From IMG/VR virus record IMGVR_UViG_3300032322_001765, positions 1-64,000 of that record: 64,000 bases of DNA, one strand, 5' to 3'. The position numbers were made by a program, and so were the translations under genes. How positions within the stretch are numbered: the stretch's first letter is position 1; each line of letters opens with the position of its first letter. The notes under the pieces are model-generated. The model worked only from the letters and a program-made list of their open reading frames with translations. It had not been told where the DNA came from and made no database searches. Positions 8,085-26,912 of the stretch are shown one piece after another.

Positions 8085-8164
8085 ATAATATTTATTATAC
8101 ATTACAACAGTAGAAATATGAAGCTATAAAGGTAAGGTAAAAGGTGATAAGTAGCCACTCTTTT

Positions 8165-9720: not shown

Positions 9721-12102
9721 TTATGACTGTAAATTATTGGTATTAGTGTAATGATTATAGAGCCATTCCCAATCGTAACTTAATTTTAATTTATCAAATT
9801 CACCATTAACTGTTTCATAGTAATCTACCGCATCTTTTGCACCTTTTAAAGACCACTGACTAAATTGCCCATCAGCTACACTTAACCAAACATCTAATCT
9901 ATATCTACTTTGTTCATCAATTACATTTAAAGAATTATATTTTAACTTGATGACTTCTCTAAACGCAGTTCGCCAAGTATCCCATTCGCTAGTATTATAA
10001 ATACCTATTCCAGAATTTATATTGACTAAAGTATGAGGGCTATCTAATGTAAAATCTAGTCCTTTGCCAGTAGTTGATAGGGTAAGATTTTTGTTATTTA
10101 AAACAACAGCCATATGTCCATATTCTAACCCATTTAAAATATTTGTGGCAGTGAAGATATAATGTTTTGAAGTATGAGTTCGTTTTGGTTGATAACTAAA
10201 ATCAAAATTAGGACTGACCTTACACTTGCTGTTTATTAAAAAGTACCAAGGAGTTAAAGCAGCGTTTGCTGCTGCATGTTGACTCGCAACTCTTCCTTTA
10301 ACGTTACTAACTTTTATTACTCTATTCGGCAAATGTTTAGTTACTTCTAATAAATGTTCGTAGCGGTCATTTTCACCTTGTTCTCCGTTACTTAAAAATA
10401 TAATATCTAATGGTTCATGACGATACCCTAAATTATGATATTTGACATATGGATAATCTTCTAATTTATCGTACATCTTTACTTTTGCATTCTTAGGAAT
10501 CAAAGCTGCAACATCATCTACAATATGAACGTGTGGTATTGAGTCATCTGAAATTATATTAGAGAAATTAAGATTAATATTGCCTATATAGGTATATGTG
10601 GTTTCTTCTTTGTATTCATTTATTCTATCAAAAATACTATCAATATACTCTACTTCGTTTATTTTTAAATCACATTTAATCTCATTTATAAATTTATTAC
10701 TTTGTGCATTTTTTGATTTATAAATTACTGTTGGCATATTTTCGCTAGAATGATACTGGTTACCAAACACGTAATTATATTTTTCTTCTGTATCATCTGG
10801 ATGCCAACTAAAATCAAAACTATCAATGTTAATTGGTTCAACAACTCTAAAATTACGTATATTTGGTAATTTGATTACTCGTTGATCCGAACAATATTTT
10901 TTTATAGCTACACTAGATTCAACATATATAGGACCGCCGGTTTTTTGCCATTGAGTTCCAAATTCATAATTCATCAACGGATCATGTGGATTAGGCACCC
11001 AGCCGTAATCGAACATTCTGTCATCAATATCATTAGGTATTTTCCAGTTTTCTTTATTTGGTAATAAAACTGCTTTTATATCTTTGATATATTTTTTATC
11101 AGTCGCATCTTTAACTCTATATTGGTAGGTTGGCATAGTTTCACCATCATACCATTGATTACCAAAAACATAGATGTAGGGAGGGTCGTGCGGGTTCGGC
11201 ACCCAACTTTGATCTATTACTGCATTATTAACTAATGGGCGCCAGCATCTACTATCAACATCAGGTAACAAAGTTGCTAACAAATCATGTACATATTTCT
11301 TTTCAATAGCTCCTTTTACCTTATACTGATAAGTAGGCATTGTTTTACTATCATACCATTGATTACCAAAAACATAAATGTACGGCGGCTCCGTTTCGTC
11401 TGGGTGCCATGAAAAATCAATTGTGCTGTTGCTAACTAAAGGTCTCCAACATCTATCATTACTGTCAGGTAATTTTTTTACTTTTTGAAAGTCAACATAC
11501 TTAACACCATGTGCATTTTCATTTATGTACGTAGGTCCTCCTGTCTTCTGCCATTGAGTTCCGAACTGCCAATTTAAGGGAGGTTCGTATGGATTAGGGC
11601 ACCAACTATAATCAAAGTTACTATCATCAATATTATCAGGAATTTGCCACTTATCTTTGTTTGATAATAAAGTAGCTTTTACATTGTATACATATTTCTT
11701 ATCTGTTGCACCTTTAACTCTATATTGGTATGTGGGCATTGTTTCACTATCATGCCATTGATTACCAAATACATAGATAAAGGGAGGGTCAGTATCGTCA
11801 GGATGCCAACTGTAATCAATAGTTGCATTGGCAATGAGAGGTCTCCAACATCGATTATTAGAATCAGGCAATCTTATTGCGTGTTGAAGATTTTGATATT
11901 TTATTCCTTCATGCTGCGGCACGATGAATTTAGGTCCGCCTGTCTTCTGCCACTGAGTTCCAAATTGATGTATGTAGGGTCTTTCGTAGATATAAGGGCG
12001 CCAATTAAAATCAAAGTTACTTGTATCTAATCCTTCTGGTATCTCCCAATAACCTTGTTCATTTAATTTTTTTCTGCGTTCTAGTTCTTCTTCACTATAC
12101 AT
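9721..12102 (-). CDS. Tandem-repeat protein with C-terminal GT-A-like domain
   Basis: Seven ~66-aa W/P-rich repeats (FD[FY]SWxP...FG[NT]QW), then a domain paralogous to 19771-20718. Confidence 0.75.
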   Translation of the reverse strand: MYSEEELERRKKLNEQGYWEIPEGLDTSNFDFNWRPYIYERPYIHQFGTQWQKTGGPKFIVPQHEGIKYQNLQHAIRLPDSNNRCWRPLIANATIDYSWHPDDTDPPFIYVFGNQWHDSETMPTYQYRVKGATDKKYVYNVKATLLSNKDKWQIPDNIDDSNFDYSWCPNPYEPPLNWQFGTQWQKTGGPTYINENAHGVKYVDFQKVKKLPDSNDRCWRPLVSNSTIDFSWHPDETEPPYIYVFGNQWYDSKTMPTYQYKVKGAIEKKYVHDLLATLLPDVDSRCWRPLVNNAVIDQSWVPNPHDPPYIYVFGNQWYDGETMPTYQYRVKDATDKKYIKDIKAVLLPNKENWKIPNDIDDRMFDYGWVPNPHDPLMNYEFGTQWQKTGGPIYVESSVAIKKYCSDQRVIKLPNIRNFRVVEPINIDSFDFSWHPDDTEEKYNYVFGNQYHSSENMPTVIYKSKNAQSNKFINEIKCDLKINEVEYIDSIFDRINEYKEETTYTYIGNINLNFSNIISDDSIPHVHIVDDVAALIPKNAKVKMYDKLEDYPYVKYHNLGYRHEPLDIIFLSNGEQGENDRYEHLLEVTKHLPNRVIKVSNVKGRVASQHAAANAALTPWYFLINSKCKVSPNFDFSYQPKRTHTSKHYIFTATNILNGLEYGHMAVVLNNKNLTLSTTGKGLDFTLDSPHTLVNINSGIGIYNTSEWDTWRTAFREVIKLKYNSLNVIDEQSRYRLDVWLSVADGQFSQWSLKGAKDAVDYYETVNGEFDKLKLSYDWEWLYNHYTNTNNLQS

Positions 12103-13586
12103 TAGCTACACACTTTTACACCATACAACGTTTCAAATCTATCTGCGTCACTTCTATCATTGACCATAGGTTCGCCTCGTATGTTTAATGATGTATTTAA
12201 GAGCATAGGACAACCAGTCATAATATACCATTTTTCTAGCAATTCTCTGATTCCCGAACCATCTTTTTTAACTGTCTGTACTCGACTGGTGCCGTCAACA
12301 TGGCATATAGCAGGAAAAGAATCAGGAAACTTACAATTAGCGATTGATTGCATATAAGGGCTATGATCCCACCCATTACAGAAATCAAAATACTGGTCAG
12401 CCATTTCATAAAGTATGACAGGGGCGAAGGGTCTAAATTGTTGTCTACGCTTAATTTCATTCACTTTGCCTTTTATATCAATTTGTCTAGGATCAGCCAG
12501 TAAACTTCTATTGCCCAATGCTCTAGGACCAAACTCTGCTTTTCCTGATGCAACACCAACTATTTTATTTTTAAGTAATTCATCTAATATATTATTAACA
12601 GGATACTTACCTTTTATATCATATCCTAAATATGCAGTGTTCCAATTAATAGCCATCCCATATGCAAGCGCAGCAGCACCTAAACTACTACCTGCATCAC
12701 CTGGATTAGGCATTATCCAAATATTATCAAAGTAATGTCCTAAATTTCTATTTGCTAAACAATTTAAGGCAACGCCGCCCATATAAACTAAATTACTACT
12801 AAAATTAAAATCCTTTGCTCTACGCATCACATTATAGATTAAATTTTCTGCTAAGTCTTGCGCACCTCTTGCAATTATAAATTCATCCATTGTGTCAAAC
12901 TCTTTATCATTTAATCCTAAATGTAAATTTTCTTTAAACTGAATTTCCCACTCATCGTTAATAAAATAATCTTTAAGTTGGTTTTTAAAAAGTTCACTAC
13001 TTACGCCATACGCACTCATACCCATTAAAATATATTCTTCTTCCATAGGTTCTAATCCGGCTTTTTGTGTCATTGCACTATAAAATAAACCTATACTATT
13101 TGGATAACCTTGACGCCATAACAACTTATATTTTGCAGCTCCCATATGGTTATACTCAGCAGCCCATATACTTATAGTGTCAAACTCTCCGATAGCGTCT
13201 ATTACAACTACAGTAGCTCTTTGAAAGGGGCTAGTTTGAAATCCGGCTGCGGCGTGACTTAAATGATGGTTATACGAAACAATTTTTTGATTAGATTTAA
13301 GTAATGGTTTAATTTGATCATTTAATACTTGTTTAGTTGTCAATTTATTAATTTGTAAACCTTCACCAGAATACAAACGTCTTAATTGTTTTTTAAAAGG
13401 ATTCTCATAATAAGCAATCGTGCTGATATTATAGTTTTGTACTTCTTGAATTAAATTTTCACAAATATTTTTATCATTTTTTATTTTACTATAACGCTCA
13501 CTATGCCCAGCAAAAACTATGCCACCTGTATTATTAATGACTGTTAATGCTGCATCATGAAAACCTGCACTAATACCAAGTATCAT
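12102..13586 (-). CDS. O-carbamoyltransferase, NodU/CmcH/TobZ family
   Basis: HDAA...ERYSK, HHLSH, GGVALNC, GDAG, EFGPRALGNRSLLADP, FRPFAP, HVDGTSRVQTV and LNTSLN are all present. Confidence 0.95.
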   Translation of the reverse strand: MILGISAGFHDAALTVINNTGGIVFAGHSERYSKIKNDKNICENLIQEVQNYNISTIAYYENPFKKQLRRLYSGEGLQINKLTTKQVLNDQIKPLLKSNQKIVSYNHHLSHAAAGFQTSPFQRATVVVIDAIGEFDTISIWAAEYNHMGAAKYKLLWRQGYPNSIGLFYSAMTQKAGLEPMEEEYILMGMSAYGVSSELFKNQLKDYFINDEWEIQFKENLHLGLNDKEFDTMDEFIIARGAQDLAENLIYNVMRRAKDFNFSSNLVYMGGVALNCLANRNLGHYFDNIWIMPNPGDAGSSLGAAALAYGMAINWNTAYLGYDIKGKYPVNNILDELLKNKIVGVASGKAEFGPRALGNRSLLADPRQIDIKGKVNEIKRRQQFRPFAPVILYEMADQYFDFCNGWDHSPYMQSIANCKFPDSFPAICHVDGTSRVQTVKKDGSGIRELLEKWYIMTGCPMLLNTSLNIRGEPMVNDRSDADRFETLYGVKVCS

Positions 13587-13687
13587 TTGTATATGAAGGG
13601 ATCTCTTTTTCGTAATTCTTTGAGTTTTTTTCGATATTTATATTCACGAATTACAAAATAGTACAATTCAATAATTTTTTTAATCAT
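13583..13687 (-). CDS. 34-aa basic peptide preceding the carbamoyltransferase (not in ORF track)
   Basis: MIKKIIELYYFVIREYKYRKKLKELRKRDPFIYK. ATGA overlap with 13586 and start overlapping the upstream stop. Confidence 0.75.
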   Translation of the reverse strand: MIKKIIELYYFVIREYKYRKKLKELRKRDPFIYK

Positions 13688-14540
13688 TTTTTATCCAATT
13701 AATCACCGTCTCCGCTACTTGCTTATTAAAATAAATACCCGGATGCGATCCATTGCCTTTTTTATCTTTTTGATTAAGTATATTTAGATCAATATCTCTA
13801 GCAGAATATTTGTTTATAAAATCCATGTCAAAAACTTTGGTTTTTACTATTGGTATTTGAAACTGTTCTAACGGTATATGTGTAATTTTTTTATGGTCTT
13901 TTAAAAATTGATCTAAATTACTTTGGTAAGTCGTAAATTCAAAAATTTTAATATTTAAAGACTTGCAAAGCAAGGAAATTGTCTTTCTATAAAAAGCAAA
14001 CCTATTATTAATATGTGAATTTTCTAGAAGAAAGCAGGTATATGCAGGTTTCCAAAATGGCGCCATAGGATTATTAACCAAATAAAACTCTAGTTTATCA
14101 TTAGTCCAGTAACAATTTCTTGTTAATTCAGGCCAATTTATAATAATTGCTTTAGGCCTACATTCATCATTTGATAGCATTTCTATAATATTTAAAAAAC
14201 TAAAATCAACTGATGCCCCACCTATTGCCCCGTTTACATAATCTAATCTCAAAGCTTTGCTAGTAATATAAGAAAATGTTTCTTCTAATGGTAATCCTGT
14301 GCCAGTTGTAAAACTGCAACCAAAAAATGCTATATAATTAGATAAATTTACTTCATCTAATTCTTTTTCCATTCTATATCCATAAGAATTAAACTTGTAT
14401 AGAATTTTACGATTAGACCATATCCATTTATCACCAAATTTTTCTTTATTTTTTACAAATTTTTCTTCCGGATCACCGGGATAAAATTCAGCAGATAAAT
14501 TTAATTCATTTTCATACGGAGATTTCAGTAAATAAGTCAT
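13680..14540 (-). CDS. SGNH/GDSL-like hydrolase or acyltransferase
   Basis: FFGCSFTTG (block I-like), GGASVD, RD...SHPG (block V-like). Likely start is ATG 14540. Confidence 0.6.
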   Translation of the reverse strand: MTYLLKSPYENELNLSAEFYPGDPEEKFVKNKEKFGDKWIWSNRKILYKFNSYGYRMEKELDEVNLSNYIAFFGCSFTTGTGLPLEETFSYITSKALRLDYVNGAIGGASVDFSFLNIIEMLSNDECRPKAIIINWPELTRNCYWTNDKLEFYLVNNPMAPFWKPAYTCFLLENSHINNRFAFYRKTISLLCKSLNIKIFEFTTYQSNLDQFLKDHKKITHIPLEQFQIPIVKTKVFDMDFINKYSARDIDLNILNQKDKKGNGSHPGIYFNKQVAETVINWIKND

Positions 14541-15684
14541 GTAATATTTTATAAAATTCAGAAAAAGTATTTTGATAGGTTTCGTTTCTTGATTCATCTA
14601 ACCATTTATTATATTTAATTCCTTGTTTAAACATTTCAACATTTTCATCTTTAGACACATGACTCAATAAATGCTGATAATTTTTAAGTTTATCAGTTAA
14701 TTTGTATTTTAGGGTTTCGGGTAAAATTCTTACGCTATAAAATTTTGGGTCATAAACAATATTTGATTGAACCTTAATATTTAAATTATTAAAATATTCC
14801 ATAAACTCAGGAACATAATAAATGTTCATCCAACTTATAGTCTGTGTTACACTTGTGTTTATCCAACTATTTTCTTTAAGTTTTTGTAAATTATATTCTA
14901 CATCATCCCATTTAGTTCCTTTTCTGATATAGTCGTTACGCTTACCTAAATCGTCAATACTACAATGTACTTCTACTTCTTTAAAGTTTTTCCAAATGTC
15001 TAATAATTGATTTGGTAGGTTAGACATATTAATACTATACCATAATTTTATTTGTTTGTTTAATCCATGTTCGATAAGTCTTTCTAAATAATTCCAATGT
15101 TTCTCTACTAAAGTAGGTTCACCCCCGTTTATATAAATTAACTCAACATCTTGACTGTGTGATAACAAGTCATTCCAAAATTCATCTGATTGTGTCCAAT
15201 TTGAATTAATCTTATTATCGTAAATTGTAACAAAATTTAATTCAGATTGAAGTTTATTGTACTCACTTATCCATTGAGTACTTGATGCCGGATTACATGT
15301 TCTACATTTTGCATTGCATAAGTTCCCTAACCTTAATTCAATAAACTTAAAATTAGGTTTTATAATTCCGTTTATATCATCATAGTCAGTGCCATATCGA
15401 GAAAGTTCTAATTTTCTTTTACTTTGTAAATTTAAATCTTCTTCTTGGTAACATCTTAAACATGCTTGTGGTTTTATTCCATTGCGCATTTCGTTACGTG
15501 TCTGTACAAAAAAATCGCTATTAACTATTTCTATAACCTTATTTTGATTTAAATTTAATTTTTTTCCGTTGGTTCTAGCAAAACTCATACTGTTAGTATG
15601 ATCACTAATGCAACATAATGAACTAGTTCCTTCAGGATGTGTTGCTAAATGCATCCATGGCAATGGACAAAAAGTGTCGGTCAT
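14512..15684 (-). CDS. Radical SAM protein with N-terminal Twitch-type domain
   Basis: CNAKCRTC (CxxxCxxC), INGGEP, and N-terminal C..W...LCC...CLRC. Confidence 0.9.
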   Translation of the reverse strand: MTDTFCPLPWMHLATHPEGTSSLCCISDHTNSMSFARTNGKKLNLNQNKVIEIVNSDFFVQTRNEMRNGIKPQACLRCYQEEDLNLQSKRKLELSRYGTDYDDINGIIKPNFKFIELRLGNLCNAKCRTCNPASSTQWISEYNKLQSELNFVTIYDNKINSNWTQSDEFWNDLLSHSQDVELIYINGGEPTLVEKHWNYLERLIEHGLNKQIKLWYSINMSNLPNQLLDIWKNFKEVEVHCSIDDLGKRNDYIRKGTKWDDVEYNLQKLKENSWINTSVTQTISWMNIYYVPEFMEYFNNLNIKVQSNIVYDPKFYSVRILPETLKYKLTDKLKNYQHLLSHVSKDENVEMFKQGIKYNKWLDESRNETYQNTFSEFYKILHDLFTEISV

Positions 15685-16988
15685 ATATTTTTATACCAAA
15701 TTAAAATATCTTTGTTTCTTGATAATATTGAAAGTAACATATCATTTTCGTTTCTGTGTAAGTCGATTTTGTTAAACCTACGCTTTCCAGCTTTTAAACC
15801 ATTTACATGGTCGCTATACTTTTCGTCAAATGTTTGCCGATACTTCATATCATTAAATGTTTCACTATAAACCTTTGTTAAATGGTTACCTTTTATATTT
15901 TCGTATTCTATAAGGTCATCTAACATCGGGTCTAAAATTCTATGGGGCACACACATGGGACTCATTAATACACTTGATTCAAAATCGAAAGTTATTTTTA
16001 CATAAGATTTTACATTAAGTTGAACCGCTAAATCAATCATGTTTTTCATATCTAGCATTCCAGGGAGGGTCAATGTCACATCTAACACCATTGCATCCAT
16101 ACCATATATGTCATTTAAAAATAATCCCTTTTTAAAATTAGTTAACCATTCATTATATTTTAGACCAGATCGAATATACTCCGCAACTTCACCCGTAGCA
16201 TCCATACTAGCACATATATTAACTTTTTTGAAATTAGGAAGTAAATCATATAGGTTTTGATTTTTGTATGATACACGACTTAGATTAGTATTATATCTAA
16301 CAACAACGTTTTTACTATGTCCTGATTCAACCAAATATTTCATAACTTCCCAATGTATATCATACATTAGTGGCTCTCCACCGACCCAATAAATTTCTTC
16401 AATAGTATTATTTTTTACAGCTTCCCATAGTTCACTTTCAACGACTGTAGTTTGAAAATTTTCAATTTGATTTTTATTTTCATGTACCATCCATCTGTCG
16501 ACCGACGGGTTCCACATGTTTAAAATTCTTTTTTCACTTTCCCAAGAACTTGACAATTGCTCCCCACACATTCTGCATTTAAAATTACAAAGGTTATGTA
16601 TTCTATAATCAAACGAAATTGGTTTCATTGTGGTATGACCAGTTTCATCTGTTGAACTTAATATTTCATCAATTTTATGTGGGAATAAATTTTCGGTAAA
16701 ATACTGTCGATAGGTATATAAATTCAATATATTATTATTACAGACTTGACATTCAGGAATGTTTTCTCCATTAAGTATTCTACGACGAACACTACGCATA
16801 TGTTCGCTATTCCAATGTTCTTCCAGTGTCGTTGGTTTATACTCGTTACTATCAGAACCTTCGCTATCAATATATTGTTTTTGCCAACTAGCCTGTTCAC
16901 GACTAGCACAGCATAATCTACGTTCGCTTTGTGGGCTTATGTAAGTATGTGTCCATGGTGCAACACAAAATGTCTTTTTATCAATCAT
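15681..16988 (-). CDS. Radical SAM protein with N-terminal Twitch-type domain
   Basis: CNFKCRMC, VGGEP, and N-terminal CVAPW...LCC...CQVC. Confidence 0.9.
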   Translation of the reverse strand: MIDKKTFCVAPWTHTYISPQSERRLCCASREQASWQKQYIDSEGSDSNEYKPTTLEEHWNSEHMRSVRRRILNGENIPECQVCNNNILNLYTYRQYFTENLFPHKIDEILSSTDETGHTTMKPISFDYRIHNLCNFKCRMCGEQLSSSWESEKRILNMWNPSVDRWMVHENKNQIENFQTTVVESELWEAVKNNTIEEIYWVGGEPLMYDIHWEVMKYLVESGHSKNVVVRYNTNLSRVSYKNQNLYDLLPNFKKVNICASMDATGEVAEYIRSGLKYNEWLTNFKKGLFLNDIYGMDAMVLDVTLTLPGMLDMKNMIDLAVQLNVKSYVKITFDFESSVLMSPMCVPHRILDPMLDDLIEYENIKGNHLTKVYSETFNDMKYRQTFDEKYSDHVNGLKAGKRRFNKIDLHRNENDMLLSILSRNKDILIWYKNI

Positions 16989-18408
16989 ATGTTGCTAATG
17001 GCTCATCTATATTTGTACCATCACCGCTATTCAATGGTTGGTAGGGTAATACTGTGGTTTCAATTGATTCTATCCAATCTGTTAAAATTTTAGGAAACAC
17101 ACTTAACGATTTGTTTCTACGTTGGTCGTATTCGGCGTAGAATGTTTTAAAATCTTTCCATAATAACTCTTTATTACTTGTCCTACGATGTGGGGCGTCA
17201 ACAACTTCTAAATAGTCTATCAAACGCTCTATGCTAGCTTTTTCACTCTCATGCCACAGTGGTTTGTTTTTTGCATTTTCATACCAATTACTTAAATTAT
17301 TTCTAACGTAATCTTTAATGTGATCAGGTAATGCTAATGGACTTTGAAAGCTCGGAAAACGCAATAGATTTAAGCTAACCGTGGGGCTCTTACAGTTTGG
17401 ATCTTCTTTAAGTTCATATATCTCGTCCAAGAAGTGATGAATACTGAATAAACATAAACTGTTTATTGTCATCATAACGTGAAGGCCTTCGAGATTTGCC
17501 TCAGATGCAATACGTTTAAAATTTTTCTTCCATAGTTTATATTCTAATCCATCACGAATATATTCAGCATGTTTACCCGTAGCTTCGCATGAAGTATACA
17601 AATGAAACCTTTTTATATTTTTTGTTTTTAAAATTAATTTGTCAATGATATCCTCTTTTGCAATTAAATTACTATTAACCGCAAAGCGCATATTACTATC
17701 CTGTTTCTCGAACCAATCGAACAACTTCCAAGTATTACCGGACATGAGTGGTTCGCCACCTGTAATACGTAGTTCTTCTAAACTTTCATTAAGACCATTA
17801 TCCCACCATTCCCAAAATGCTTGCACATAAGGATTTTCACTATCATCTTTGTAAGGCTGTGCCCATGATCCGTCTTGTTGAAAGGCGCCGGCGCCATCGC
17901 TAACTAAGTTTTGATAAGGTCCTTTTTTCTTTATGTCATTCGCCCAAGTTGTACTAAAACTTGCATTGCAATAACTACAAGCCAAATTACACACTCTATC
18001 AAAACTAATTTCAAAGGTTTTCAATAATACATCATGATCCCAAGGAGTCTGATTTGTTTTTGATATATCTTCATCACTATAGATAATTGTTTTAAATGTT
18101 CTATCAGAAACTTGGTCACCACCTATATCTTCAATTTTCCAACAATATTCACACTCTCTAGGTCTTTCACCTTCGAGCATCATTTTACGCATTAATTTTT
18201 TATGGTTAGTATTGTGTATAGCCGAAACATTTACTTTAACTTCTTCTATAGGAATTCTGTGAGCCGGCGGGTGATGACAGCTTGCAGTTGTACCAGACCC
18301 CAACCAAGTAGTTGCATTGTACCATTTTGCTGCACAATAACTTGGACTAATTTTATTGATTACTCTATTTCTATAGTCTGTCAAACTCTCATCAGGTTTT
18401 TTAGGCAT
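16981..18408 (-). CDS. Radical SAM protein with N-terminal Twitch-type domain (SCHH subtype)
   Basis: CNLACSYC, TGGEP, and N-terminal CAAKW...SCHHP...CEYCW. Confidence 0.9.
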   Translation of the reverse strand: MPKKPDESLTDYRNRVINKISPSYCAAKWYNATTWLGSGTTASCHHPPAHRIPIEEVKVNVSAIHNTNHKKLMRKMMLEGERPRECEYCWKIEDIGGDQVSDRTFKTIIYSDEDISKTNQTPWDHDVLLKTFEISFDRVCNLACSYCNASFSTTWANDIKKKGPYQNLVSDGAGAFQQDGSWAQPYKDDSENPYVQAFWEWWDNGLNESLEELRITGGEPLMSGNTWKLFDWFEKQDSNMRFAVNSNLIAKEDIIDKLILKTKNIKRFHLYTSCEATGKHAEYIRDGLEYKLWKKNFKRIASEANLEGLHVMMTINSLCLFSIHHFLDEIYELKEDPNCKSPTVSLNLLRFPSFQSPLALPDHIKDYVRNNLSNWYENAKNKPLWHESEKASIERLIDYLEVVDAPHRRTSNKELLWKDFKTFYAEYDQRRNKSLSVFPKILTDWIESIETTVLPYQPLNSGDGTNIDEPLATYD

Positions 18409-19771
18409 TTAATTCTTTCCAAAAGTTTTCATATTGGGGAAACGTACTTATAAAGTCTGTACCTCTCCGTAAATCGTATTCATTTATAAACTTCACAAAA
18501 TCTTCTTGTAAATCTATTCTTGTTTCATTGTTTGTAAGGTAATCGCAAAATCTTTTGATTTGATCCCATTCCTCAAGATACAGTCTTGCGTGTTCAGCTT
18601 TGATATAGTATTTTAGTAATAATTCTGACTTTGCTAAAATATCTTTGGCAAAATGCTCTCTTACATCTTTCGGAAGAATAAGGACATTTAAATGGGGAGG
18701 CCAACGTAGATAATTTATACTTACAGGAACTCTATTATTTGCACTCGTTAAATTAAATTCTTTTCGTAATTCAATAACCAAATCTAAAAAATCAGTAGTA
18801 GTTGGTAAACTTAGCACATTCATTGTGGTCATAATACTCACTGTAGAATCTGTATTACTTAAAATTTTTCTAACGTTATCTATCCATTTGTTGTAATTTA
18901 ATCCATATCTGCTGTATTCTGCTTGTTCACCTATCGATTCCAAACTTGTATAAATATCCACTCGTTTAACAGAATTGGATAGTTTATTAATTGTTTCTAT
19001 AAAATTATCTATCAATTTATCGTCTACACATAAATTAGAATTAATTGCTAATTCTAAGTTTGGTTTGGGATTATCGATAAGGTACGATAAAGTTTTTTGT
19101 ACATCTTTACTTAACAGCGGTTCACCACCTGTAATTCTAAACACTCGTAAATCGTCAATAATAGTAGGAAAATATTTATGGAAAGTATTTACATATGGAT
19201 TATCGTCACTATGCTTGTAAGGAAAACGTCCTACTTGTTTTAACCAATCTAGATTATGATTACTATTAAATGTAGGATAGGGCCCATGTCTTTCAATTTC
19301 TTCCATCCACTTGCTCGACACCTCAGGACTGCAATAACTACATTTAAAATTACACACATTACTGAATGAAACTTCTAAATAAGCAGGATTTATATCAGCA
19401 TATGGATCGCTACGTGCGACTTCATCTATTCTGTCCCACGCCCAATAATCTGCTGTTTTATAATGTCTATCACTAAAGTAAGATTTATCCAAATCTTCTA
19501 CGTTCCAACAATAGTCGCATTCTTGAGGTCGTTCGCCTTTTAACATTTTAACACGTTGTTCTTTTTTATAAGAACTGTTATGCAAGCTTGCTGGATTTTG
19601 TAATTCGCTTAATTGAATTTTATGTGGGCTGGGATGATGACAACTATGGTTATAACCATTTTGTAAATTTAAAGTTGTTTGCAACCACTTGGCACTACAA
19701 AAACTAGAACTAATATTGTTAATTTTTATAACTTTTTGTTTTAATTCCTCAATTCTCTGTTCGTTGCTCAT
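18401..19771 (-). CDS. Radical SAM protein with N-terminal Twitch-type domain (SCHH subtype)
   Basis: CNFKCSYC, TGGEP, and N-terminal CSAKW...SCHHP...CDYCW. The TAATG overlap supports a start at 19771. Confidence 0.9.
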   Translation of the reverse strand: MSNEQRIEELKQKVIKINNISSSFCSAKWLQTTLNLQNGYNHSCHHPSPHKIQLSELQNPASLHNSSYKKEQRVKMLKGERPQECDYCWNVEDLDKSYFSDRHYKTADYWAWDRIDEVARSDPYADINPAYLEVSFSNVCNFKCSYCSPEVSSKWMEEIERHGPYPTFNSNHNLDWLKQVGRFPYKHSDDNPYVNTFHKYFPTIIDDLRVFRITGGEPLLSKDVQKTLSYLIDNPKPNLELAINSNLCVDDKLIDNFIETINKLSNSVKRVDIYTSLESIGEQAEYSRYGLNYNKWIDNVRKILSNTDSTVSIMTTMNVLSLPTTTDFLDLVIELRKEFNLTSANNRVPVSINYLRWPPHLNVLILPKDVREHFAKDILAKSELLLKYYIKAEHARLYLEEWDQIKRFCDYLTNNETRIDLQEDFVKFINEYDLRRGTDFISTFPQYENFWKELNA

Positions 19772-20718
19772 TACCACCCTTCTATTTTTCTGATTACATC
19801 TATCTCTTTTACTAATGGTCCTAAATTATGTCTATCACTTTTATAATGCCTTTTAAAAAATTTACTTTGTTCAGAACTTAACATACATATTGGTAATCCT
19901 AATTTAGTATCAAGTAAATTTCCTATTCTGTCAATTTCATCTAATAAATTAACTTTTTCATGTTCTTCCCAAAGCTTTTCAAAATTATCAAACCATTGTA
20001 CTTCATTTGAATTCCAATCAGTGAGCATAGTCATGTACGTTCCTAATCTTGCACCATAAATACCCCATAAACCATTCTCAACGTCTGCACCTACATTATG
20101 CCAAATAGTTAAGTTATCAAGGTTTCTACTTACTACGCTTCGTTGAAAATCGTTTATGTTTGGTTTTGTTCCATTAATTAAACACATTTTCACTCCTTCT
20201 CTGAAACCTGCACGCCAAGCCTGAAATGGTCTGTAGTTAGGATAAGTAGTGCTATAACAATCGTTCATGCTCCAGTATAACCCATTTGTATAATCTAAAC
20301 AAAAATCTACTGTAGTGATATTATTGCCGTCACTTGCCTCATGAGTTTTCATATTTTCTACATAGGTTTTAGTCCAACTACTTATACCGCCGTTTCCATA
20401 TTGTAAGCCATTGATTATATTTTTTGCTTTCCAACGATACTGTGCTTTTTGATAACTTTCATCTTTGTCTGTAAAATCTAGTGTTAAATTAAAAAACTCA
20501 AAATTAGGTAAATTATCTCCGTCAATTAATATAAAACGTTCAGTATCACTTTCTTCTGCTGCGGCTTTATGTGCTGCGTCACTTCCTTTAACACCGTCTA
20601 CTCTACGTGCCCATGGTACCATGTTTTTAATTTTAACCCAAAATTCTTCTTTTTGTGGCTCATCATAACTTAAATAAATGCAATCTAAGTCTGCTATATC
20701 AACTTTATCATAACTCAT
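19771..20718 (-). CDS. GT-A-like glycosyltransferase
   Basis: YLSYDEP...VDGVKG..AAH..AA...FILIDGDN (DxD motif), NGLQYGNGG, WRAGFREGVK. Confidence 0.6.
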   Translation of the reverse strand: MSYDKVDIADLDCIYLSYDEPQKEEFWVKIKNMVPWARRVDGVKGSDAAHKAAAEESDTERFILIDGDNLPNFEFFNLTLDFTDKDESYQKAQYRWKAKNIINGLQYGNGGISSWTKTYVENMKTHEASDGNNITTVDFCLDYTNGLYWSMNDCYSTTYPNYRPFQAWRAGFREGVKMCLINGTKPNINDFQRSVVSRNLDNLTIWHNVGADVENGLWGIYGARLGTYMTMLTDWNSNEVQWFDNFEKLWEEHEKVNLLDEIDRIGNLLDTKLGLPICMLSSEQSKFFKRHYKSDRHNLGPLVKEIDVIRKIEGW

Positions 20719-20998
20719 ATATTTTTGCTTCCCATCTACAAACTTTACCTAAATAATCTTCATCCACAAGTATTGCATTATCTTCATATGCGCATCTTAC
20801 ACCATTGACATTTGGTACTACTTTAATAAAATTTATTTTACCTGCAAGCTTGACTATTTTTTGTTCGACGATTCGTATATCAAATCTACACTCTGCATAA
20901 GTTTGAGCATCGACCACTATATAATTTCCAGGCAAATCCTCACAAGTATAGAATAATACATCTCCGTTTTCATCGTAATATAATCTAAACTCTACCAT
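20708..20998 (-). CDS. Hypothetical protein
   Basis: Overlaps both neighbours in the coupled cluster. Confidence 0.7.
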   Translation of the reverse strand: MVEFRLYYDENGDVLFYTCEDLPGNYIVVDAQTYAECRFDIRIVEQKIVKLAGKINFIKVVPNVNGVRCAYEDNAILVDEDYLGKVCRWEAKIYEL

Positions 20999-21785
20999 AT
21001 TCTTCCTTTACAATCTTAGCAAAATCTTTATTATGATAGTGGAAAATATAAGTCTGTGGTATTTTTTGAATTCGAATTGGGTGAGTTAATTCATAAACTA
21101 ACTCTCGCTTCCAATCATCAGTAATCAAATTATTTACATATTGTTTCATATGAACGAAACTAAATCCATCGACGCAGGGCATAGTTGTATTTTCTACTCC
21201 CATAATATGACAAACTATACTATAAACCCAATCCGTAGTTGGTAACTCATCTACATTGCATTTAAATTTTTTAATTATATCATACCAATTTTCAAAAACA
21301 AACCGCACATTCTTAAAAAATAGTTCAGCAAATGGTGACTTTTTAAAATATGTTACTGCATTATAAACGTCGGGCAAATTATTATCATCAATAAACTTTC
21401 TGTAAAATCTTACATCACTTATTTGTTGTTTATAATCTCTTATGGTTGTACAAACACAAACATCCTTTAAACTCAACACATCAAATAGATAATCAATATC
21501 AGTGTTGACTATCATATCCGCTTCTAGTTTTATTGTATGATCATATGGGCTGGCTTCATAGACCTGCCAATCATTAACCAACTTCCATGCACTATTTGGT
21601 TCTAAGTCCCCGTATGGCAATTCGATAACATTGTCAAATGCAGCACACATACTTACGTCATTACTTAATAATGTTATGTTTGCTTTTGGATTTGCTTTTT
21701 TTAAACTCAAAGCAAGTGCGTCTGCACAATCAATATAATTTGTTTCTTTCGTATTTTGTGCTAAAACAAGATAACCTTTCGTCAT
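20985..21785 (-). CDS. GT-A-like sugar transferase paralogue (GT8/GT71-like)
   Basis: GYLVLA...SPYDHTIKLEADM (EAD at the DxD position). Paralogue of 21782-22579. Confidence 0.6.
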   Translation of the reverse strand: MTKGYLVLAQNTKETNYIDCADALALSLKKANPKANITLLSNDVSMCAAFDNVIELPYGDLEPNSAWKLVNDWQVYEASPYDHTIKLEADMIVNTDIDYLFDVLSLKDVCVCTTIRDYKQQISDVRFYRKFIDDNNLPDVYNAVTYFKKSPFAELFFKNVRFVFENWYDIIKKFKCNVDELPTTDWVYSIVCHIMGVENTTMPCVDGFSFVHMKQYVNNLITDDWKRELVYELTHPIRIQKIPQTYIFHYHNKDFAKIVKEEYGRV

Positions 21786-22579
21786 ACTATTTCCATAAAG
21801 TTTTGTTTATTAAGACAATGAAAATCCATATCTTTAACTATGATATAATTCTTTTTTATTTTTTCTTTATGAATTTTTTCTCTGTATATTTTATATTCTG
21901 TATTGTAAAGCTCTTGTCCAACTCTTTCGATTTTTAATTCTTTGTCTACATGTACAAGATTCCATGGCATATGGCATTCGGGATCATCTAAATGTCCATT
22001 AATAATTCTGTGCGCAATAGTTAGTGCATAGTCATTTCGATACATAAGACTGTACATTCCATATAATTCCGCATAATATCTATAGTTATGTTGAATCATT
22101 TTAATACATTCAAATAACTGTTTTGTTTTGTTCGTTTTTTTGAAAACAATAATTGTAGCCCACATCGTAGGGTAAGATATTGGGCTAATTAATTCATTTT
22201 CTATATTCTCCATTAAAAATTTTATGTTATTCGGAACGACATAATCAGTGCATATATTAAACAGTAAGTTAAGCGAATCACTATTAATTAAATAATCTGT
22301 ATCTAATAATAATGTTTCATCATACGGCGTTAAGTCGTATGCTTGATATCTACCTTTGTTAATCCAAACCGTTTTATTCTTTTTATTACTTTTATCAGAA
22401 TCAACTATAAAAACATTATCAAATTTATAATCATATTTCGCTATATCAGTATTAATATCTGTAACTACACTAGATTTTAAACCTAAAAAATGTTCCGCAC
22501 GTTTTGCGGTTGCGATAGCCATTTTAAAATAGTCAACACTATCAGTGTTGAACGCAAATAATAGAATGCCTCTGCTCAT
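21782..22579 (-). CDS. GT-A-like sugar transferase (GT8/GT71-like)
   Basis: GILLFA...TPYDETLLLDTDY (DxD) and YRNDYA. Confidence 0.65.
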   Translation of the reverse strand: MSRGILLFAFNTDSVDYFKMAIATAKRAEHFLGLKSSVVTDINTDIAKYDYKFDNVFIVDSDKSNKKNKTVWINKGRYQAYDLTPYDETLLLDTDYLINSDSLNLLFNICTDYVVPNNIKFLMENIENELISPISYPTMWATIIVFKKTNKTKQLFECIKMIQHNYRYYAELYGMYSLMYRNDYALTIAHRIINGHLDDPECHMPWNLVHVDKELKIERVGQELYNTEYKIYREKIHKEKIKKNYIIVKDMDFHCLNKQNFMEIV

Positions 22580-22881
22580 CTATTATTTTTTAATAATGAA
22601 TGTTCTTCATACCATTGAGTAATTATATTGTTATAATTCTCTTTTGCTTTATCTAAGAGTTGTTTCCTGTTTACTTTAATTGGGTTTTCATAATTATCTA
22701 ATAAAATAATTGTCTCCTCATCGATTCCATTAAGTTCAGAAATAAAATTTAAAGAACTTACCCATAATCCTCCTTGGTCAGCAAAAATCATCTTGCTTTG
22801 ATATTTTTCTTTGAGTTGATTTTTTTGAGAAATAAAATCGAATCTAATCTTAGACTCAACCAAAAGATTTTCCACGTTCAT
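22576..22881 (-). CDS. Hypothetical protein (possible fibre-assembly-type)
   Basis: AGGAG RBS before ATG 22881. ATGA coupling to the downstream GT. Confidence 0.65.
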   Translation of the reverse strand: MNVENLLVESKIRFDFISQKNQLKEKYQSKMIFADQGGLWVSSLNFISELNGIDEETIILLDNYENPIKVNRKQLLDKAKENYNNIITQWYEEHSLLKNNR

Positions 22882-22924: not shown

Positions 22925-23935
22925 TTAATTTCCGACAACTAAAGATTGGACATTAACAGAACCCCAAGTATTTGTTAACACACCACCTGAGGCTACGCTC
23001 TTAGGGTATCTAACAACTAAGGTTGTTGTTGAATTATTGACTGGACCCGTATTGTTTCCTGCTGCTATACTAAAACTGTTAGGATCTTGATCCCACACAC
23101 ATGTTACAGTTAATATAGAACCTATGTCACCATTAGTACCTTGAGTGCCGTTTGTTTTAGCAAACACCGAAATATTGGTTCCTGAATAAAACCCGATATC
23201 TGATACAATACCTGTAATAGTTGGATACATTCTAAATAATTGCCTATCTGATGTTGATAAACTATAGTATCCAATTGATGTATTAAGAATTTGTGGGGTT
23301 CCGGTACCACCTATTCTTGTAAAACCGTTGTATGTTGTTCCGGCAATTTTAGCTGTAGAAGTTCCTGTAGGGGCACTTAAAACCAAAGTTCCAATAGAAT
23401 TAGCTAAAGAATTAAATAGGATATCTGCTTTTGATGTTGTTGCTGCGTGGGTGAAATTTAATACTATCTGTCCGCCCGCATTAAAAAAATATCTAGCTTT
23501 ATCACCTGATTCAAATGTGCAAATAAAGGTAAAGGTGATTTTGTCACTCCAATTTGATGTTGTAAATCGTGTTGTAGTTGTTTCTGTTATGCCCTGAGCC
23601 AAAGCATAGTGTTTATTGTTTTCTATTTGTGCTAAGCCTGTTGTTACTGCACTAAGATATGTGATAACATTGTTATCGACCGGTGGGGTAAGAGGATTAA
23701 CTAAAGACACTCCTTGATGCGAGGCTATGGTATTAATATTGTTTATTAAATTAGCCCAATTTTCACTTTCAATTAGAACGTTTTGATTTACTGATGTAAG
23801 TGCAGGTTGACCGTAACCCGAATCACGCAAACCTGTCGCAAAAATTTCGTTTAAATTAGGATTGGTAGTTGCTTGTGTGCCAATTAAGGTGTTGTAATCA
23901 ATGGCTTGTATTAAGCCACCAGCTTGATAAGTCAT
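22925..23935 (-). CDS. Virion structural protein (paralogue of 23937-24890)
   Basis: Shared MTY..GLI.A.D.N, W..LIN and ARYFFNAGGQI motifs. Thr/Gly-rich. Confidence 0.7.
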   Translation of the reverse strand: MTYQAGGLIQAIDYNTLIGTQATTNPNLNEIFATGLRDSGYGQPALTSVNQNVLIESENWANLINNINTIASHQGVSLVNPLTPPVDNNVITYLSAVTTGLAQIENNKHYALAQGITETTTTRFTTSNWSDKITFTFICTFESGDKARYFFNAGGQIVLNFTHAATTSKADILFNSLANSIGTLVLSAPTGTSTAKIAGTTYNGFTRIGGTGTPQILNTSIGYYSLSTSDRQLFRMYPTITGIVSDIGFYSGTNISVFAKTNGTQGTNGDIGSILTVTCVWDQDPNSFSIAAGNNTGPVNNSTTTLVVRYPKSVASGGVLTNTWGSVNVQSLVVGN

Positions 23936-23936
23936 A

Positions 23937-24890
23937 TTAACTACCCGTTACTGAACCTGTTACAGAAATACTTCCCCAAGTGTTAGATAAGTAGCTTATT
24001 GACGGAGGTCTTATAGTACAAGTTGTGGTTGAACCTGACGTTAACCCAAGAGTTGAGCCTCCGTTAGGATCTTCATCCCACAATGTTGTAATTGTTAATA
24101 CACTGCCGGATCCTGGAAGGGCATTTAGTCTTAAATTTACAGAAATAAATGTTCCTGTATATGCTGACGGTGTTCCTGTTCCTAGCTGTCTGTACACTTC
24201 TTGGTTAGTAGTTGTCAATGCATAAAAACCGGTATTCGCCGACAACGTGGCCGGTGTTCCAGAGCCACCAATTTTAGTAATACCATTATAAGTTGTACCT
24301 GCAATTGTGCAGCTGCCCGAATTTATACCACTAATAACCAATGTACCCATTGCAGTTGCTAAATTACTTAGTAAAGCATTTACACCTGTTCCAGTAGGAT
24401 GAGCGAAAGTTAATGCTATTTGTCCTCCTGCATTGAAAAAATACCTAGCTTCCGCCGCACCAGCAAACGTTACTGAATGAGTAAAAGTTATCGCTGAACT
24501 CCAAGCTGTTGAATTGGTTGTTGCAGTTGGAGAAGATGTTCCTTGTGCAACAGCACTAAATCTAGAATTGTAAATATTTTGTAGATTTGTAGATATTGCA
24601 TTAATTACCTCTATTCTATCTCCTTGGCTAGGGGCAGTAATTGAAGTAATTGCTGTTCCTTGGTGACTGGCTACAGTTTGTGTAGTATTAATTAAATTTG
24701 CCCAATCCGTATGTGAGACCAAAGTGAAGGCCTCTACGTTAGGGACACCAGTTTGTCCATAGCCGGCGTTGCCTATCCCTAAACCCCATACAGTATTTAA
24801 AGTATTAGTTGTTGAAATTCCACTGGTAGCATTACCGACAAACGTATTAAAATCTGCTGCTTCAATCAGCCCAAAGCTAGAATATGTCAT
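23937..24890 (-). CDS. Virion structural protein
   Basis: Same motifs as above. AAGGTG RBS. Located in the tail module. Confidence 0.7.
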   Translation of the reverse strand: MTYSSFGLIEAADFNTFVGNATSGISTTNTLNTVWGLGIGNAGYGQTGVPNVEAFTLVSHTDWANLINTTQTVASHQGTAITSITAPSQGDRIEVINAISTNLQNIYNSRFSAVAQGTSSPTATTNSTAWSSAITFTHSVTFAGAAEARYFFNAGGQIALTFAHPTGTGVNALLSNLATAMGTLVISGINSGSCTIAGTTYNGITKIGGSGTPATLSANTGFYALTTTNQEVYRQLGTGTPSAYTGTFISVNLRLNALPGSGSVLTITTLWDEDPNGGSTLGLTSGSTTTCTIRPPSISYLSNTWGSISVTGSVTGS

Positions 24891-26760: not shown

Positions 26761-26912
26761 TAGTTATCGCCTCGTATTTGCACTAACACCTCATTCGTGT
26801 TAGGGTCGTGAATTTTTATAGCAGAACTGAAATAAAAGCCCGAATATTCGTTTAAAGAATCTCTTTTTTCTGCTTCAACCTGCTTTTCTATCTTCTCTGA
26901 TTTTTCCATCAT
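26760..26912 (-). CDS. 50-aa protein (not in ORF track)
   Basis: MMEKSEKIEKQVEAEKRDSLNEYSGFYFSSAIKIHDPNTNEVLVQIRGDN. TAATG coupling, with a late box 7 nt upstream. Confidence 0.75.
   Translation of the reverse strand: MMEKSEKIEKQVEAEKRDSLNEYSGFYFSSAIKIHDPNTNEVLVQIRGDN

Follow-up and report, generated by a model that had tools for sequence, protein, structure and literature searches.

The DNA stretch under study (the window, 64,000 nucleotides of the uncultured jumbo phage record IMGVR_UViG_3300032322_001765) carries, right behind its tail-fibre genes, 13 tightly packed genes encoding sugar-adding, radical SAM and carbamoyl-adding enzymes. The set recurs in well over a hundred, and probably several hundred, other phage contigs and most likely builds an unusual sugar decoration, whose target, probably the virion's own fibres, is untested. 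A first-pass annotation had described the region 9721-22881 as thirteen consecutive genes overlapping without a gap (a hypothetical, two GT8/71-like, a hypothetical, a GT-A, four twitch radical SAM, an SGNH, a peptide, a carbamoyltransferase and a repeat-GT), and our analysis confirmed this observation. The block and its upstream partners (u1 to u4 and a giant ORF) are laid out as follows, all on the minus strand:

26929..44013 (-), giant ORF of 5694 aa that heads the conserved block
26140..26760 (-), u4, virion or fibre-type protein, candidate acceptor
24900..26111 (-), u3, virion or fibre-type protein, candidate acceptor
23937..24890 (-), u2, virion or fibre-type protein, candidate acceptor
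22925..23935 (-), u1, virion or fibre-type protein, candidate acceptor
22576..22881 (-), g1, about 101 aa, unknown function, first gene after the fibre genes
21782..22579 (-), g2, 265 aa, GT8-like glycosyltransferase, paralog of g3
20985..21785 (-), g3, 266 aa, GT8-like glycosyltransferase with a glycogenin-like N-terminal half
20708..20998 (-), g4, 96 aa, unknown function
19771..20718 (-), g5, 315 aa, GT-A-fold glycosyltransferase with a helical C-terminal domain
18401..19777 (-), g6, 458 aa, N-terminal-twitch radical SAM enzyme, orthogroup 1
16981..18408 (-), g7, 475 aa, N-terminal-twitch radical SAM enzyme, orthogroup 2
15681..16988 (-), g8, 435 aa, N-terminal-twitch radical SAM enzyme, orthogroup 3
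14512..15684 (-), g9, 390 aa, N-terminal-twitch radical SAM enzyme, orthogroup 4
13680..14540 (-), g10, about 286 aa (305 aa from the longest ORF, which starts at 14597), putative SGNH-like esterase or acyltransferase
13583..13687 (-), micro-ORF, 34 aa
12102..13586 (-), g12, 494 aa, NodU/CmcH/TobZ-family O-carbamoyltransferase
10618..12060 (-), g13 N-terminal part, seven repeats of about 66 aa
9721..10425 (-), g13 C-terminal domain, about 230 aa, GT-A-like

All 13 ORFs lie between 9721 and 22887, the g1 start at 22881 being an ATG located 8 nt after an AGGAG and two codons inside the longest GTG ORF. When junctions are taken from the longest ORFs, all 12 overlap, by 4, 4, 14, 11, 7, 8, 8, 4, 86, 8, 4 and 1 nt, while the 86-nt g9/g10 overlap falls to 29 nt if g10 starts at Met20, where the alignments to homologs begin. 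In contrast, only 12 of 30 same-strand junctions outside the cluster overlap in the window, so that 12 of 12 is well beyond the window's own habit (0.4^12 is about 2e-5, a rough figure). The GC content of the cluster matches the rest of the phage. Only 43 nt separate u1 from g1, and no terminator signal exceeds chance. None of the proteins g1 to g13 has a membrane segment, and no flippase, polymerase or lipid-carrier transferase is found among them.

The upstream genes are of virion or fibre type. u3 matches PHROG virion structural and tail fibre families as well as PA5oct virion structural and tail-pin annotations. u1 and u2 have no annotated relatives, and they are low-charge proteins rich in Ser, Thr, Asn and Gly. 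The giant ORF displays an FG-GAP repeat and is homologous (E 2e-12) to ORF361 of Ralstonia phage RsoM2USA, a virion protein confirmed by mass spectrometry (PMC8504454).

We next examined the identity of each gene, and the domain calls made previously are essentially right. The family profile of g3 hits glycogenin-1 and -2 in the PDB (E 7e-6 to 2e-4, profile positions 3-110), and a profile-profile alignment (hhalign) of g2 against the g3 family gives a probability of 99.5 with E 2.7e-22; g2 has no direct PDB or Pfam hit, but its invariant D93 and D95 form a DxD. For g5, an AlphaFold model (pLDDT 82.7) was compared with known folds using Foldseek, and the hits are GT-A/GT2 enzymes, the top one being the PBCV-1 capsid-glycosylating A64R (E 6e-4), although with low TM scores (0.27-0.38) and 13% identity; invariant D66, D68 and N69 form the DxD of g5. 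No Pfam, PHROG or PDB match was found for g1, which is possibly a fibre chaperone or pathway adaptor, and no PDB hit was found for g4.

The four radical SAM enzymes match NCBIfam NF033640 with E 6.5e-99 (g6), 1.2e-89 (g7), 1.3e-90 (g8) and 2.9e-102 (g9), and g6, g7 and g8 each form their own clade in the tree. In g8, Pfam places a SPASM-type match at residues 8-84, ahead of the Radical_SAM match at 130-286. In g9, the invariant residues comprise C6, C25, C75 and C78 (auxiliary cluster), C123, C127 and C130 (SAM cluster) and GGEP at 187-190. The AlphaFold model of g9 (pLDDT 91.8) has SkfB, CteB, anSME, BlsE, viperin and MoaA as nearest folds, at a TM of about 0.4 only, and no PDB sequence match exists for these enzymes. 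The four orthogroups are kept in the same order across lineages, 491 genes of the family were counted in 85 loci, and polypeptides matching the profile in two or three separate stretches exist.

The SGNH label of g10 is only weakly supported. Its family has invariant G74-C75-S76, G80, N103, G108, D249 and H266, but the matches are limited to a PDB lysophospholipase L1-like esterase (E 0.025) and to Pfam Lipase_GDSL in 3 of 12 members (E 0.018 or worse). The micro-ORF is a real, conserved gene, ending in the motif RKRDPFIY(K/R), with its stop overlapping the carbamoyltransferase start; it also contains a TATAAATA (13635-13642). The DPFIY codons differ at third positions in all four aligned loci. 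Among 55 carbamoyltransferase genes, 41 have the motif ORF in the 330 nt upstream, 40 of them ending within about 11 nt of the start, and 7 more loci carry it elsewhere in the locus; no convincing copy was found in loci without the transferase. g12 itself shows Pfam Carbam_trans_N (E 3e-32) and Carbam_trans_C (E 3e-48), PHROG 1601 (E 1.5e-95), PDB matches to a NovN-type enzyme (E 1e-43), GdmN (E 3e-41) and TobZ (E 1e-28), and the HHLSH and DAIGE motifs.

The g13 protein carries repeats of two alternating kinds (FGTQWQKTGGP and FGNQW..MPTYQY), a motif restricted to this family, whose homologs range from 520 to 1388 aa; no Pfam domain was detected. Its C-terminal domain is homologous to g5 (BLASTP E 1e-8, 27% identity over 220 aa), but it has N-[A/G/S]-K (N-S-K in the window) where g5 has D-G-D. 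It lacks the DxD motif, so it may not be a conventional transferase. The Lys is kept in 41 of 41 family members, whereas g5 and RsoM2USA ORF348 and ORF350 keep DGD.

In order to determine whether the genes scatter independently in relatives, an outcome specified in advance as counting against a common pathway, we surveyed gene order around g3 homologs. More than 558 viral contigs encode relatives of g3, and in 80 of 80 loci fetched from these the order is giant virion protein, u4, u3, u2, g1-g5, with small insertions or duplications in some. In most of them g6, the most widely kept of the four radical SAM genes, follows, usually right after g5. The g1 family is present in 77, g4, which is conserved in the jumbo clade, in 79 and g5 in 79 of the 80 loci. 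A variable tail of extra radical SAMs and nucleotide-sugar enzymes comes next. The same block is kept in a divergent marine clade at only 21-42% identity and in one isolate, RsoM2USA, where g1 corresponds to ORF354 and g6 is 45% identical to ORF349; in the marine loci and in RsoM2USA a family of roughly 200 aa takes the place of g4. Scatter is however not wholly absent, since RsoM2USA splits the set into a fibre-linked core and, about 90 kb away and beside its DNA ligase, a module comprising the g7 ortholog (ORF202, 57% identical), DUF6071 and the carbamoyltransferase. Likewise, a marine sub-cassette (radical SAM, carbamoyltransferase, repeat protein) lies beside a DNA ligase rather than fibres. 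Relatives also insert additional genes among the radical SAMs, including UDP-Glc/GDP-Man dehydrogenase-family and NeuB genes, SDR nucleotide-sugar epimerase/dehydratase genes, a sugar aminotransferase, a cupin and a nucleotidyltransferase-kinase, and in relatives the same cassette carries methyltransferases.

The previous interpretation, that the cluster makes a carbamoylated/acylated, radically modified glycan most plausibly decorating virion fibres, is partly supported. The glycan chemistry is well supported, by four GT-type domains, by a sugar- or antibiotic-type O-carbamoyltransferase and by the accessory genes of relatives, and the position behind the fibre genes is deeply conserved. On the other hand, the fibres have not been demonstrated to be the acceptor, and "acylated" rests on the weak SGNH call. 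Our literature searches found no characterised equivalent, the only mention being in passing in a pelagimyophage paper (PMC7029224).

Our preferred, still tentative, explanation is that the 13 genes form a late, cytoplasmic cassette, read through from the fibre genes, that builds and edits a glycan which most likely ends up on the phage's own fibre or baseplate-distal proteins (u1-u3, perhaps the giant protein) before or during tail assembly. In this view, the GT8-like pair g2/g3 and g5 would transfer sugars from host nucleotide-sugars onto Ser, Thr or Tyr residues of the fibre proteins and extend the chain. The radical SAM enzymes g6-g9, as ancient and non-redundant paralogs each with a SAM cluster and one auxiliary 4-Cys cluster, would each carry out one radical step on a sugar (epimerisation, dehydrogenation, deoxygenation or similar), as the twitch enzymes BtrN, HygY, AprD4 and BlsE do on carbohydrates, turning common sugars into rare ones without a full nucleotide-sugar pathway. 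g10 would add or remove an O-acyl group, while g12 would make carbamoyl-AMP from carbamoyl phosphate and ATP and O-carbamoylate a sugar hydroxyl, controlled or assisted by the micro-ORF in front. Finally, g13 would use its Trp-rich repeats to hold the glycan or fibre and its DxD-less GT-A-like domain to cap or measure it. What the sequence data establish are the gene order, the overlaps, the domain identities, the absence of membrane segments, and the conservation and modularity across relatives, while every reaction, the acceptor and the timing are inferred, late expression being assumed from position only. Protein-directed relatives support this proposal, since g3 resembles glycogenin, which glucosylates itself, and the top fold match of g5 is the chlorovirus capsid-glycosylating A64R. 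The conserved core followed by a hypervariable tailoring tail suggests diversifying selection on a surface structure that matters for adsorption, stability or evasion.

Other explanations appear less likely, although there is no direct evidence for any acceptor. The soluble enzymes could act during infection at the cytoplasmic face on host LPS core, O-antigen or capsule precursors and change the cell surface, for example to block superinfection or to stop progeny sticking to debris. GT8 is a classic LPS transferase family, best known from LPS synthesis, and this role was proposed for GT8 genes in the fibre-adjacent "host recognition cluster" of pelagimyophages (PMC7029224). In addition, the window encodes, just downstream on the other strand, a GT9 heptosyltransferase-like protein with TPR repeats and an S11 D-Ala-D-Ala carboxypeptidase, and relatives carry NeuB, UDP-sugar dehydrogenase and sulfotransferase genes typical of surface polysaccharide loci. 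Against host envelope remodelling, no membrane protein, flippase, polymerase or lipid-carrier transferase is present in g1-g13 or was identified among the accessory families scanned, a lytic jumbo phage gains little from late surface conversion, and the strict linkage to fibre genes across deep divergence is not explained.

Decoration of a hydroxymethylated base in phage DNA by the transferases, the carbamoyltransferase and the radical SAMs to evade restriction is still more doubtful, but it is kept alive by the split organisation in RsoM2USA and the marine sub-cassette, the ligase family being found in 11 of 85 loci. Phage glycosyltransferases commonly target DNA, a phage NodU/TobZ-family enzyme carbamoylates 5hmC in DNA (PMC8670742), and RsoM2USA encodes two thymidylate-synthase-like genes. 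However, according to the same study, the DNA-modifying carbamoyltransferases co-occur with a thymidylate-synthase homolog, whereas those on unmodified contigs sit next to glycosyltransferases, and a tblastn search (E 1e-3) found no TS-like gene in the 64-kb window or in any of the 185 fetched loci (3.4 Mb in all). Besides, the core sits inside the late structural block, and NeuB-type nonulosonic-acid chemistry has, to our knowledge, no DNA precedent. Least likely is that the radical SAMs cross-link or epimerise a peptide or the fibre proteins themselves, or that the whole set makes a diffusible aminoglycoside-like or mycofactocin-like glycosylated metabolite. The nearest structural neighbours of the radical SAM are mostly peptide- and protein-modifying enzymes (SkfB, CteB, SuiB, EpeE and anSME), the micro-ORF ends in a Tyr-containing motif like the MftA and PqqA precursors, TobZ- and BtrN-like parts recall aminoglycoside clusters, and a cyanophage paper labelled similar genes "antibiotic synthesis" (PMC12801897). 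Yet the micro-ORF tracks the carbamoyltransferase and not the radical SAMs, as loci with many radical SAMs but no transferase lack a convincing copy, no RRE domain, peptidase or exporter was seen, and there is no inosose synthase or other scaffold-forming enzyme.

Among described systems, mycobacteriophages carry glycans on capsid and tail-tube subunits (Freeman et al. 2023, Cell Host Microbe, as cited in PMC12619734), made in the cytoplasm by phage-encoded glycosyltransferases whose genes lie next to structural genes. Those phages carry a small number of transferase genes, two being listed for phage Maravista (PMC11256854), and no radical SAM, carbamoyltransferase, micro-ORF or repeat protein is reported there. 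The general logic of radical editing plus O-carbamoylation of sugars is the same as in aminoglycoside and nucleoside antibiotic pathways (TobZ, NovN and GdmN; BtrN, HygY, AprD4 and BlsE), but in g6-g9 the auxiliary-cluster domain is N-terminal, not C-terminal, and the setting is a phage structural operon. The 5-hydroxymethylcytosine carbamoyltransferase of the MetaGPA study (PMC8670742) belongs to the same Pfam family pair and is encoded on a phage contig, although it is paired with a thymidylate-synthase-type hydroxymethylase, while here the neighbours are glycosyltransferases and radical SAMs. The pelagimyophage "host recognition cluster" has the same layout, with a giant baseplate protein, tail fibres, then GT8 genes and "radical SAM cassettes" that differ between close genomes, and our marine loci probably include such phages, which is an inference. 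That paper only notes these genes and guesses at O-chain modification, without recognising the conserved core, the four radical SAM orthogroups or the carbamoyltransferase/micro-ORF/repeat-protein module. Chlorovirus PBCV-1 (A064R) and Mimivirus, with its fibril glycosylation clusters, are eukaryotic viruses without a radical SAM battery, and the similarity of the PBCV-1 enzyme to g5 is at fold level only. Nevertheless, these viruses supply their own transferases, and in Mimivirus also sugar-nucleotide enzymes, to coat surface proteins or fibrils, and those clusters vary by clade, like the variable tail seen here.

The region analysed is the first 64 kb of the IMG/VR contig IMGVR_UViG_3300032322_001765 (220,867 bp), which belongs to a low-GC (about 33%) jumbo myovirus whose baseplate wedge protein is 31-35% identical to those of GAP32, CBB and Atu_ph07. 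On the minus strand a structural block runs from baseplate hub and wedge genes through a giant ORF and four smaller genes, and after a 43-nt spacer it is followed by the cluster of 13 ORFs under study (g1-g10, a 34-aa micro-ORF, g12 and g13). The features whose positions are needed here are the following:
26929-44013 (-), giant ORF of 5694 aa, with an FG-GAP repeat
26763-26911 (-), ORF of roughly 49 aa that fills the gap between the giant ORF and u4, its stop overlapping the u4 start
26760-22925 (-), the four smaller genes u4, u3, u2 and u1
13583-13687 (-), the 34-aa micro-ORF
9721-10425 (-), the GT-A-like domain at the end of the repeat protein g13
8178-9305 (+), a GT9 (heptosyltransferase-family) protein with N-terminal TPR repeats, converging on the end of the cluster
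7275-8102 (-), an S11 D-Ala-D-Ala carboxypeptidase beside the GT9 gene
59826-60647 (+), an NAD-dependent sugar epimerase/dehydratase

The first-pass annotation had described thirteen consecutive genes overlapping without a gap, and this observation holds. Every junction of the cluster overlaps, in most cases by 1 to 14 nt, while the g9/g10 overlap is 86 nt when taken from the longest ORF and 29 nt if g10 starts at its likely Met20. In contrast, only 12 of 30 same-strand junctions overlap elsewhere in the window. None of the 13 products has a hydrophobic stretch long enough to span a membrane. GC content of the cluster matches the rest of the phage, and recent horizontal acquisition was rejected on this ground. 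A megablast search of the 13 kb against 50,697 phage records returned nothing, and scans for sigma-70 promoters and terminators performed no better than on shuffled sequence.

The genes g6-g9 encode full-length members of the NCBIfam family NF033640, the N-terminal twitch radical SAM family (E 1e-90 to 1e-102), with HMM scores of 331.7, 301.2, 304.4 and 342.7 bits, all above the curated cut-off of 170 bits. The auxiliary domain precedes the radical SAM core, with a Pfam SPASM match at residues 6-84 and Radical_SAM at 119-286. Seven cysteines are invariant in 55 sequences that include g6-g8, four of them in the N-terminal domain (C6, C25, C75 and C78) and three in the CX3CX2C radical SAM motif (C123, C127 and C130), while the SAM-binding motif G187-G188-E189-P190 is invariant as well; binding of the Fe-S cluster itself was not assayed. 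A confident structural model of g9 (pLDDT 91.8) has only generic SPASM/twitch, viperin and MoaA neighbours at a TM of about 0.4, and a PDB sequence-profile search found no match for the radical SAM.

We next examined the putative glycosyltransferases. The family profile of g3 hits glycogenin (GT8) at E 7e-6, but only over its N-terminal 110 positions; the Pfam GT8 model is not hit, and g2 is linked to GT8 only as a paralog of g3 (hhalign probability 99.5), so that assignment of this pair to CAZy GT8 by profile similarity is left undecided. The DxD metal and nucleotide-sugar motif is nevertheless present, with invariant D93 and D95 in g2 and an invariant D90 in g3, where the family consensus is LDxDM and the window copy reads E-A-D. 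The g5 product is predicted to adopt a GT-A fold (confident model, pLDDT 82.7) with an invariant D66-G-D68; all leading Foldseek hits are GT-A/GT2 enzymes, the best being the PBCV-1 capsid-glycosylating A64R, although TM scores are low. The g13 protein has seven Trp-rich repeats of about 66 aa and ends in a domain homologous to g5 (E 1e-8). In this domain the DxD motif is absent, the position reading N-[A/G/S]-K with Lys kept in 41 of 41 homologs, and it is either a metal-independent variant or non-catalytic. Pfam searches on seven long g13 homologs showed no extra domains, so there was no fusion evidence tying the repeats to a fibre domain.

The g12 gene encodes a two-domain NodU/CmcH/TobZ-family O-carbamoyltransferase, both Pfam domains scoring above their gathering cut-offs (112.7 bits against 24 and 164 bits against 27), with PDB hits to NovN-type, GdmN and TobZ enzymes. 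Whether its acceptor is a sugar or antibiotic hydroxyl was not measured, the only indication being the glycosyltransferases on both sides of the gene. The g10 product displays some features of SGNH/GDSL hydrolases, in that G74-C75-S76...G80 and N103 are invariant; however, the invariant Asp249 and His266 lie 17 residues apart rather than in a DxxH, and HMM matches are marginal (E 0.018-0.025), which does not settle its membership either way. Pfam, PHROGs and NCBIfam searches gave nothing for g1, g2, g4, g5, g10 or g13, while g3 had a single weak PHROG hit of unknown function. PDB sequence-profile searches found nothing for g2, g1 or g4 and noise only for g5; g1 and g4 thus have no assigned function.

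The micro-ORF between g10 and g12 ends in RKRDPFIYK, and we rejected the idea that it is an artefact of an AT-rich spacer. In four aligned loci the DPFIY codons differ at third positions only. Among the fetched loci, 41 of 55 carbamoyltransferase genes have an ORF with this ending in the 330 nt upstream, and in 40 of them it stops within about 11 nt of the start codon, while seven more loci carry it elsewhere in the locus. No convincing copy occurs where the carbamoyltransferase is absent. Across these 48 of 55 loci the micro-ORF is 34-80 aa long, with an N-terminal part variable in length and sequence and an almost invariant C-terminal ...LRKRDPF[IV]Y[RK]. It is therefore coupled to g12 and not to the radical SAM genes. 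The pattern resembles a regulatory leader or arrest peptide or a small partner subunit, and the data do not discriminate between these possibilities and a substrate. Neither a precursor peptide coupled to the radical SAM enzymes nor a peptide-recognition (RRE) domain, as in radical SAM/SPASM RiPP maturation systems, was observed, no RRE match being found by Pfam or NCBIfam.

In order to determine whether the genes scatter independently in relatives, an outcome that had been named in advance as one that would count against a common pathway, we surveyed gene order in two sets of loci. A search seeded with g9 relatives returned 80 viral loci, which together with five other loci hold 491 N-twitch radical SAM genes, typically 4 to about 10 per locus. 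The g6, g7, g8 and g9 orthologs keep their order and form four separate clades in a tree, while further paralog clades come and go. A search seeded with the g3 family matched more than 558 contigs; all 80 loci fetched show the order giant ORF, u4, u3, u2, g1, g2, g3, g4, g5, in most followed by g6, with small insertions or duplications in some, and a variable tail comes next. A marine clade keeps the same block at 21-42% identity. The tail and the marine versions contain UDP-Glc/GDP-Man-dehydrogenase-family genes, NeuB, SDR epimerase/dehydratases, a sugar aminotransferase, methyltransferases, a cupin, a nucleotidyltransferase-kinase, a 2OG oxygenase, a sulfotransferase, DUF6071 and DUF6492, which is the content of a glycan pathway. 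Besides, an ATP-dependent DNA ligase gene lies next to the radical SAM/carbamoyltransferase cassette in 11 of the 85 loci (L009, L013, L023, L024, L028, L030, L036 and L072-L075), for a reason that is unknown, and also in the isolate described below.

The radical SAM family is large, with at least 6,833 cluster representatives at E 1e-30 or better. Many polypeptides of 800-1400 aa (proteins P0241-P0390) match the profile in two or three separate stretches, which suggests paralogs that work together, although some could be gene-calling fusions. A scan of genome contigs returned one locus, in a Bacteriovoracaceae MAG; the search patterns were specific to g9 orthologs, and the scan therefore says little about bacterial distribution. 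On the 71-kb contig JAIEMA010000045.1 (L005), binned as bacterial, three N-twitch radical SAM genes are present, including g8- and g9-like copies at 62% and 45% identity; whether this is a prophage, a mis-binned phage or a true bacterial locus was not determined.

Of 50,697 deposited phage genomes, only Ralstonia phage RsoM2USA (MG752970.1) carries g3, g5 or the g13 C-terminal domain, and all of its cassette genes are annotated as hypothetical. In one region (L184, 204750-233682), ORF361, which is homologous to the giant ORF and was found in virions by mass spectrometry (PMC8504454), and the fibre-like ORF355 are followed by ORF354-347. These correspond to g1, g2, g3, the family that replaces g4, g5, g6, a stand-alone GT-A that keeps D-G-D (ORF348), and a further conserved family. 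In a second region about 90 kb away (L185, 114482-134026), the g7 ortholog (57% identity), three DUF6071 genes and the carbamoyltransferase lie beside a DNA ligase (ORF204-199). So the cassette has two modules, a fibre-linked core and a tailoring module that is usually appended to the core but can live elsewhere.

The first-pass annotation had proposed a pathway making a carbamoylated or acylated, radically modified glycan, most plausibly for decorating virion fibres; this interpretation is supported in part. The domain content and the accessory genes make a glycan pathway the well-supported part, which we consider likely, whereas the target is inferred. We favour virion fibre proteins because the core has stayed linked to the fibre genes across very deep divergence, because all parts are soluble and no export machinery is present, because the nearest characterised relatives of g3 and g5 glycosylate proteins, and because there are precedents in mycobacteriophages and giant viruses. 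The glycosyltransferase genes are adjacent to structural genes, as in virion-glycosylation cassettes of phages; attachment of a glycan to virion proteins was not measured here, and the RsoM2USA study identified only major gel bands and did not look for glycans. The radical SAM enzymes probably edit sugars, as the twitch enzymes BtrN, HygY and AprD4 do on carbohydrates; BlsE also appears among the fold matches of g9.

Alternatively, the products could remodel the host envelope, which is the published guess for pelagimyophages (PMC7029224) and which the nearby GT9-TPR and S11 carboxypeptidase genes fit, although the TPR-plus-transferase layout also recalls protein-glycosylating enzymes. DNA hypermodification is another possibility, since a related phage enzyme carbamoylates 5hmC (PMC8670742). 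However, that enzyme is paired with a thymidylate-synthase-type hydroxymethylase, and no TS-like match was found in the window or in the 185 fetched loci (3.4 Mb); the other 157 kb of the contig was not examined, and g12 was not compared residue by residue with the published 5hmC carbamoyltransferase. A peptide or small-molecule product is a further rival.

Virus-encoded glycosylation is already known, but this enzyme set and its architecture have not been described. Literature searches on N-terminal twitch enzymes, on NF033640 and on radical SAM with nonulosonic acid and phage found nothing relevant, and we found no paper on this family or on this cassette. The pelagimyophage paper mentions radical SAM cassettes and GT8 genes only in passing, while a 2025 paper on 'moraphages' lists four glycosyltransferase orthogroups among core genes of an aquatic jumbo lineage, which we could not relate to or separate from the present one. 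If the favoured reading is right, glycosylation of tail fibres is a conserved, ancient and rapidly diversifying trait of a large group of environmental myoviruses, including abundant marine ones, with bearing on how these phages recognise hosts, resist proteases or escape recognition. It would also give a first biological role to a radical SAM family with no characterised member that we could find, and the family would be a source of enzymes that edit unactivated sugar C-H bonds. RsoM2USA, a cultured phage, carries a minimal version, which makes the question directly testable.

A more far-reaching and rather unlikely reading is not excluded, in which many uncultured myoviruses and one isolate carry their own glycan-editing factory for their fibres. 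In this view, a fixed core (g1-g6) would lay down a protein-linked sugar, and a fast-evolving battery of 1 to about 10 N-terminal-twitch radical SAM enzymes would then rewrite individual sugars by radical chemistry, so that the virion gets a lineage-specific coat. This would give the large, uncharacterised family NF033640 its first function, as carbohydrate-editing enzymes, and add a new layer to phage host-range and defence-evasion biology, while the RKRDPFIY micro-ORF would be a new carbamoyltransferase control element.

Finally, two further features of the window were noted. The sugar epimerase/dehydratase (Pfam E 3.5e-30) sits among recombination and nucleotide genes, about 37 kb from the cluster, and could feed the glycan pathway. 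The T4 late-promoter box TATAAATA is rarer in the window than chance, with 8 copies (at 759, 8165, 13635, 47938, 62828 and three other positions) against 15.7 expected; four of the eight copies lie on the coding strand up to about 50 nt upstream of a start codon, including one in front of g12 and one in front of the GT9-TPR gene.
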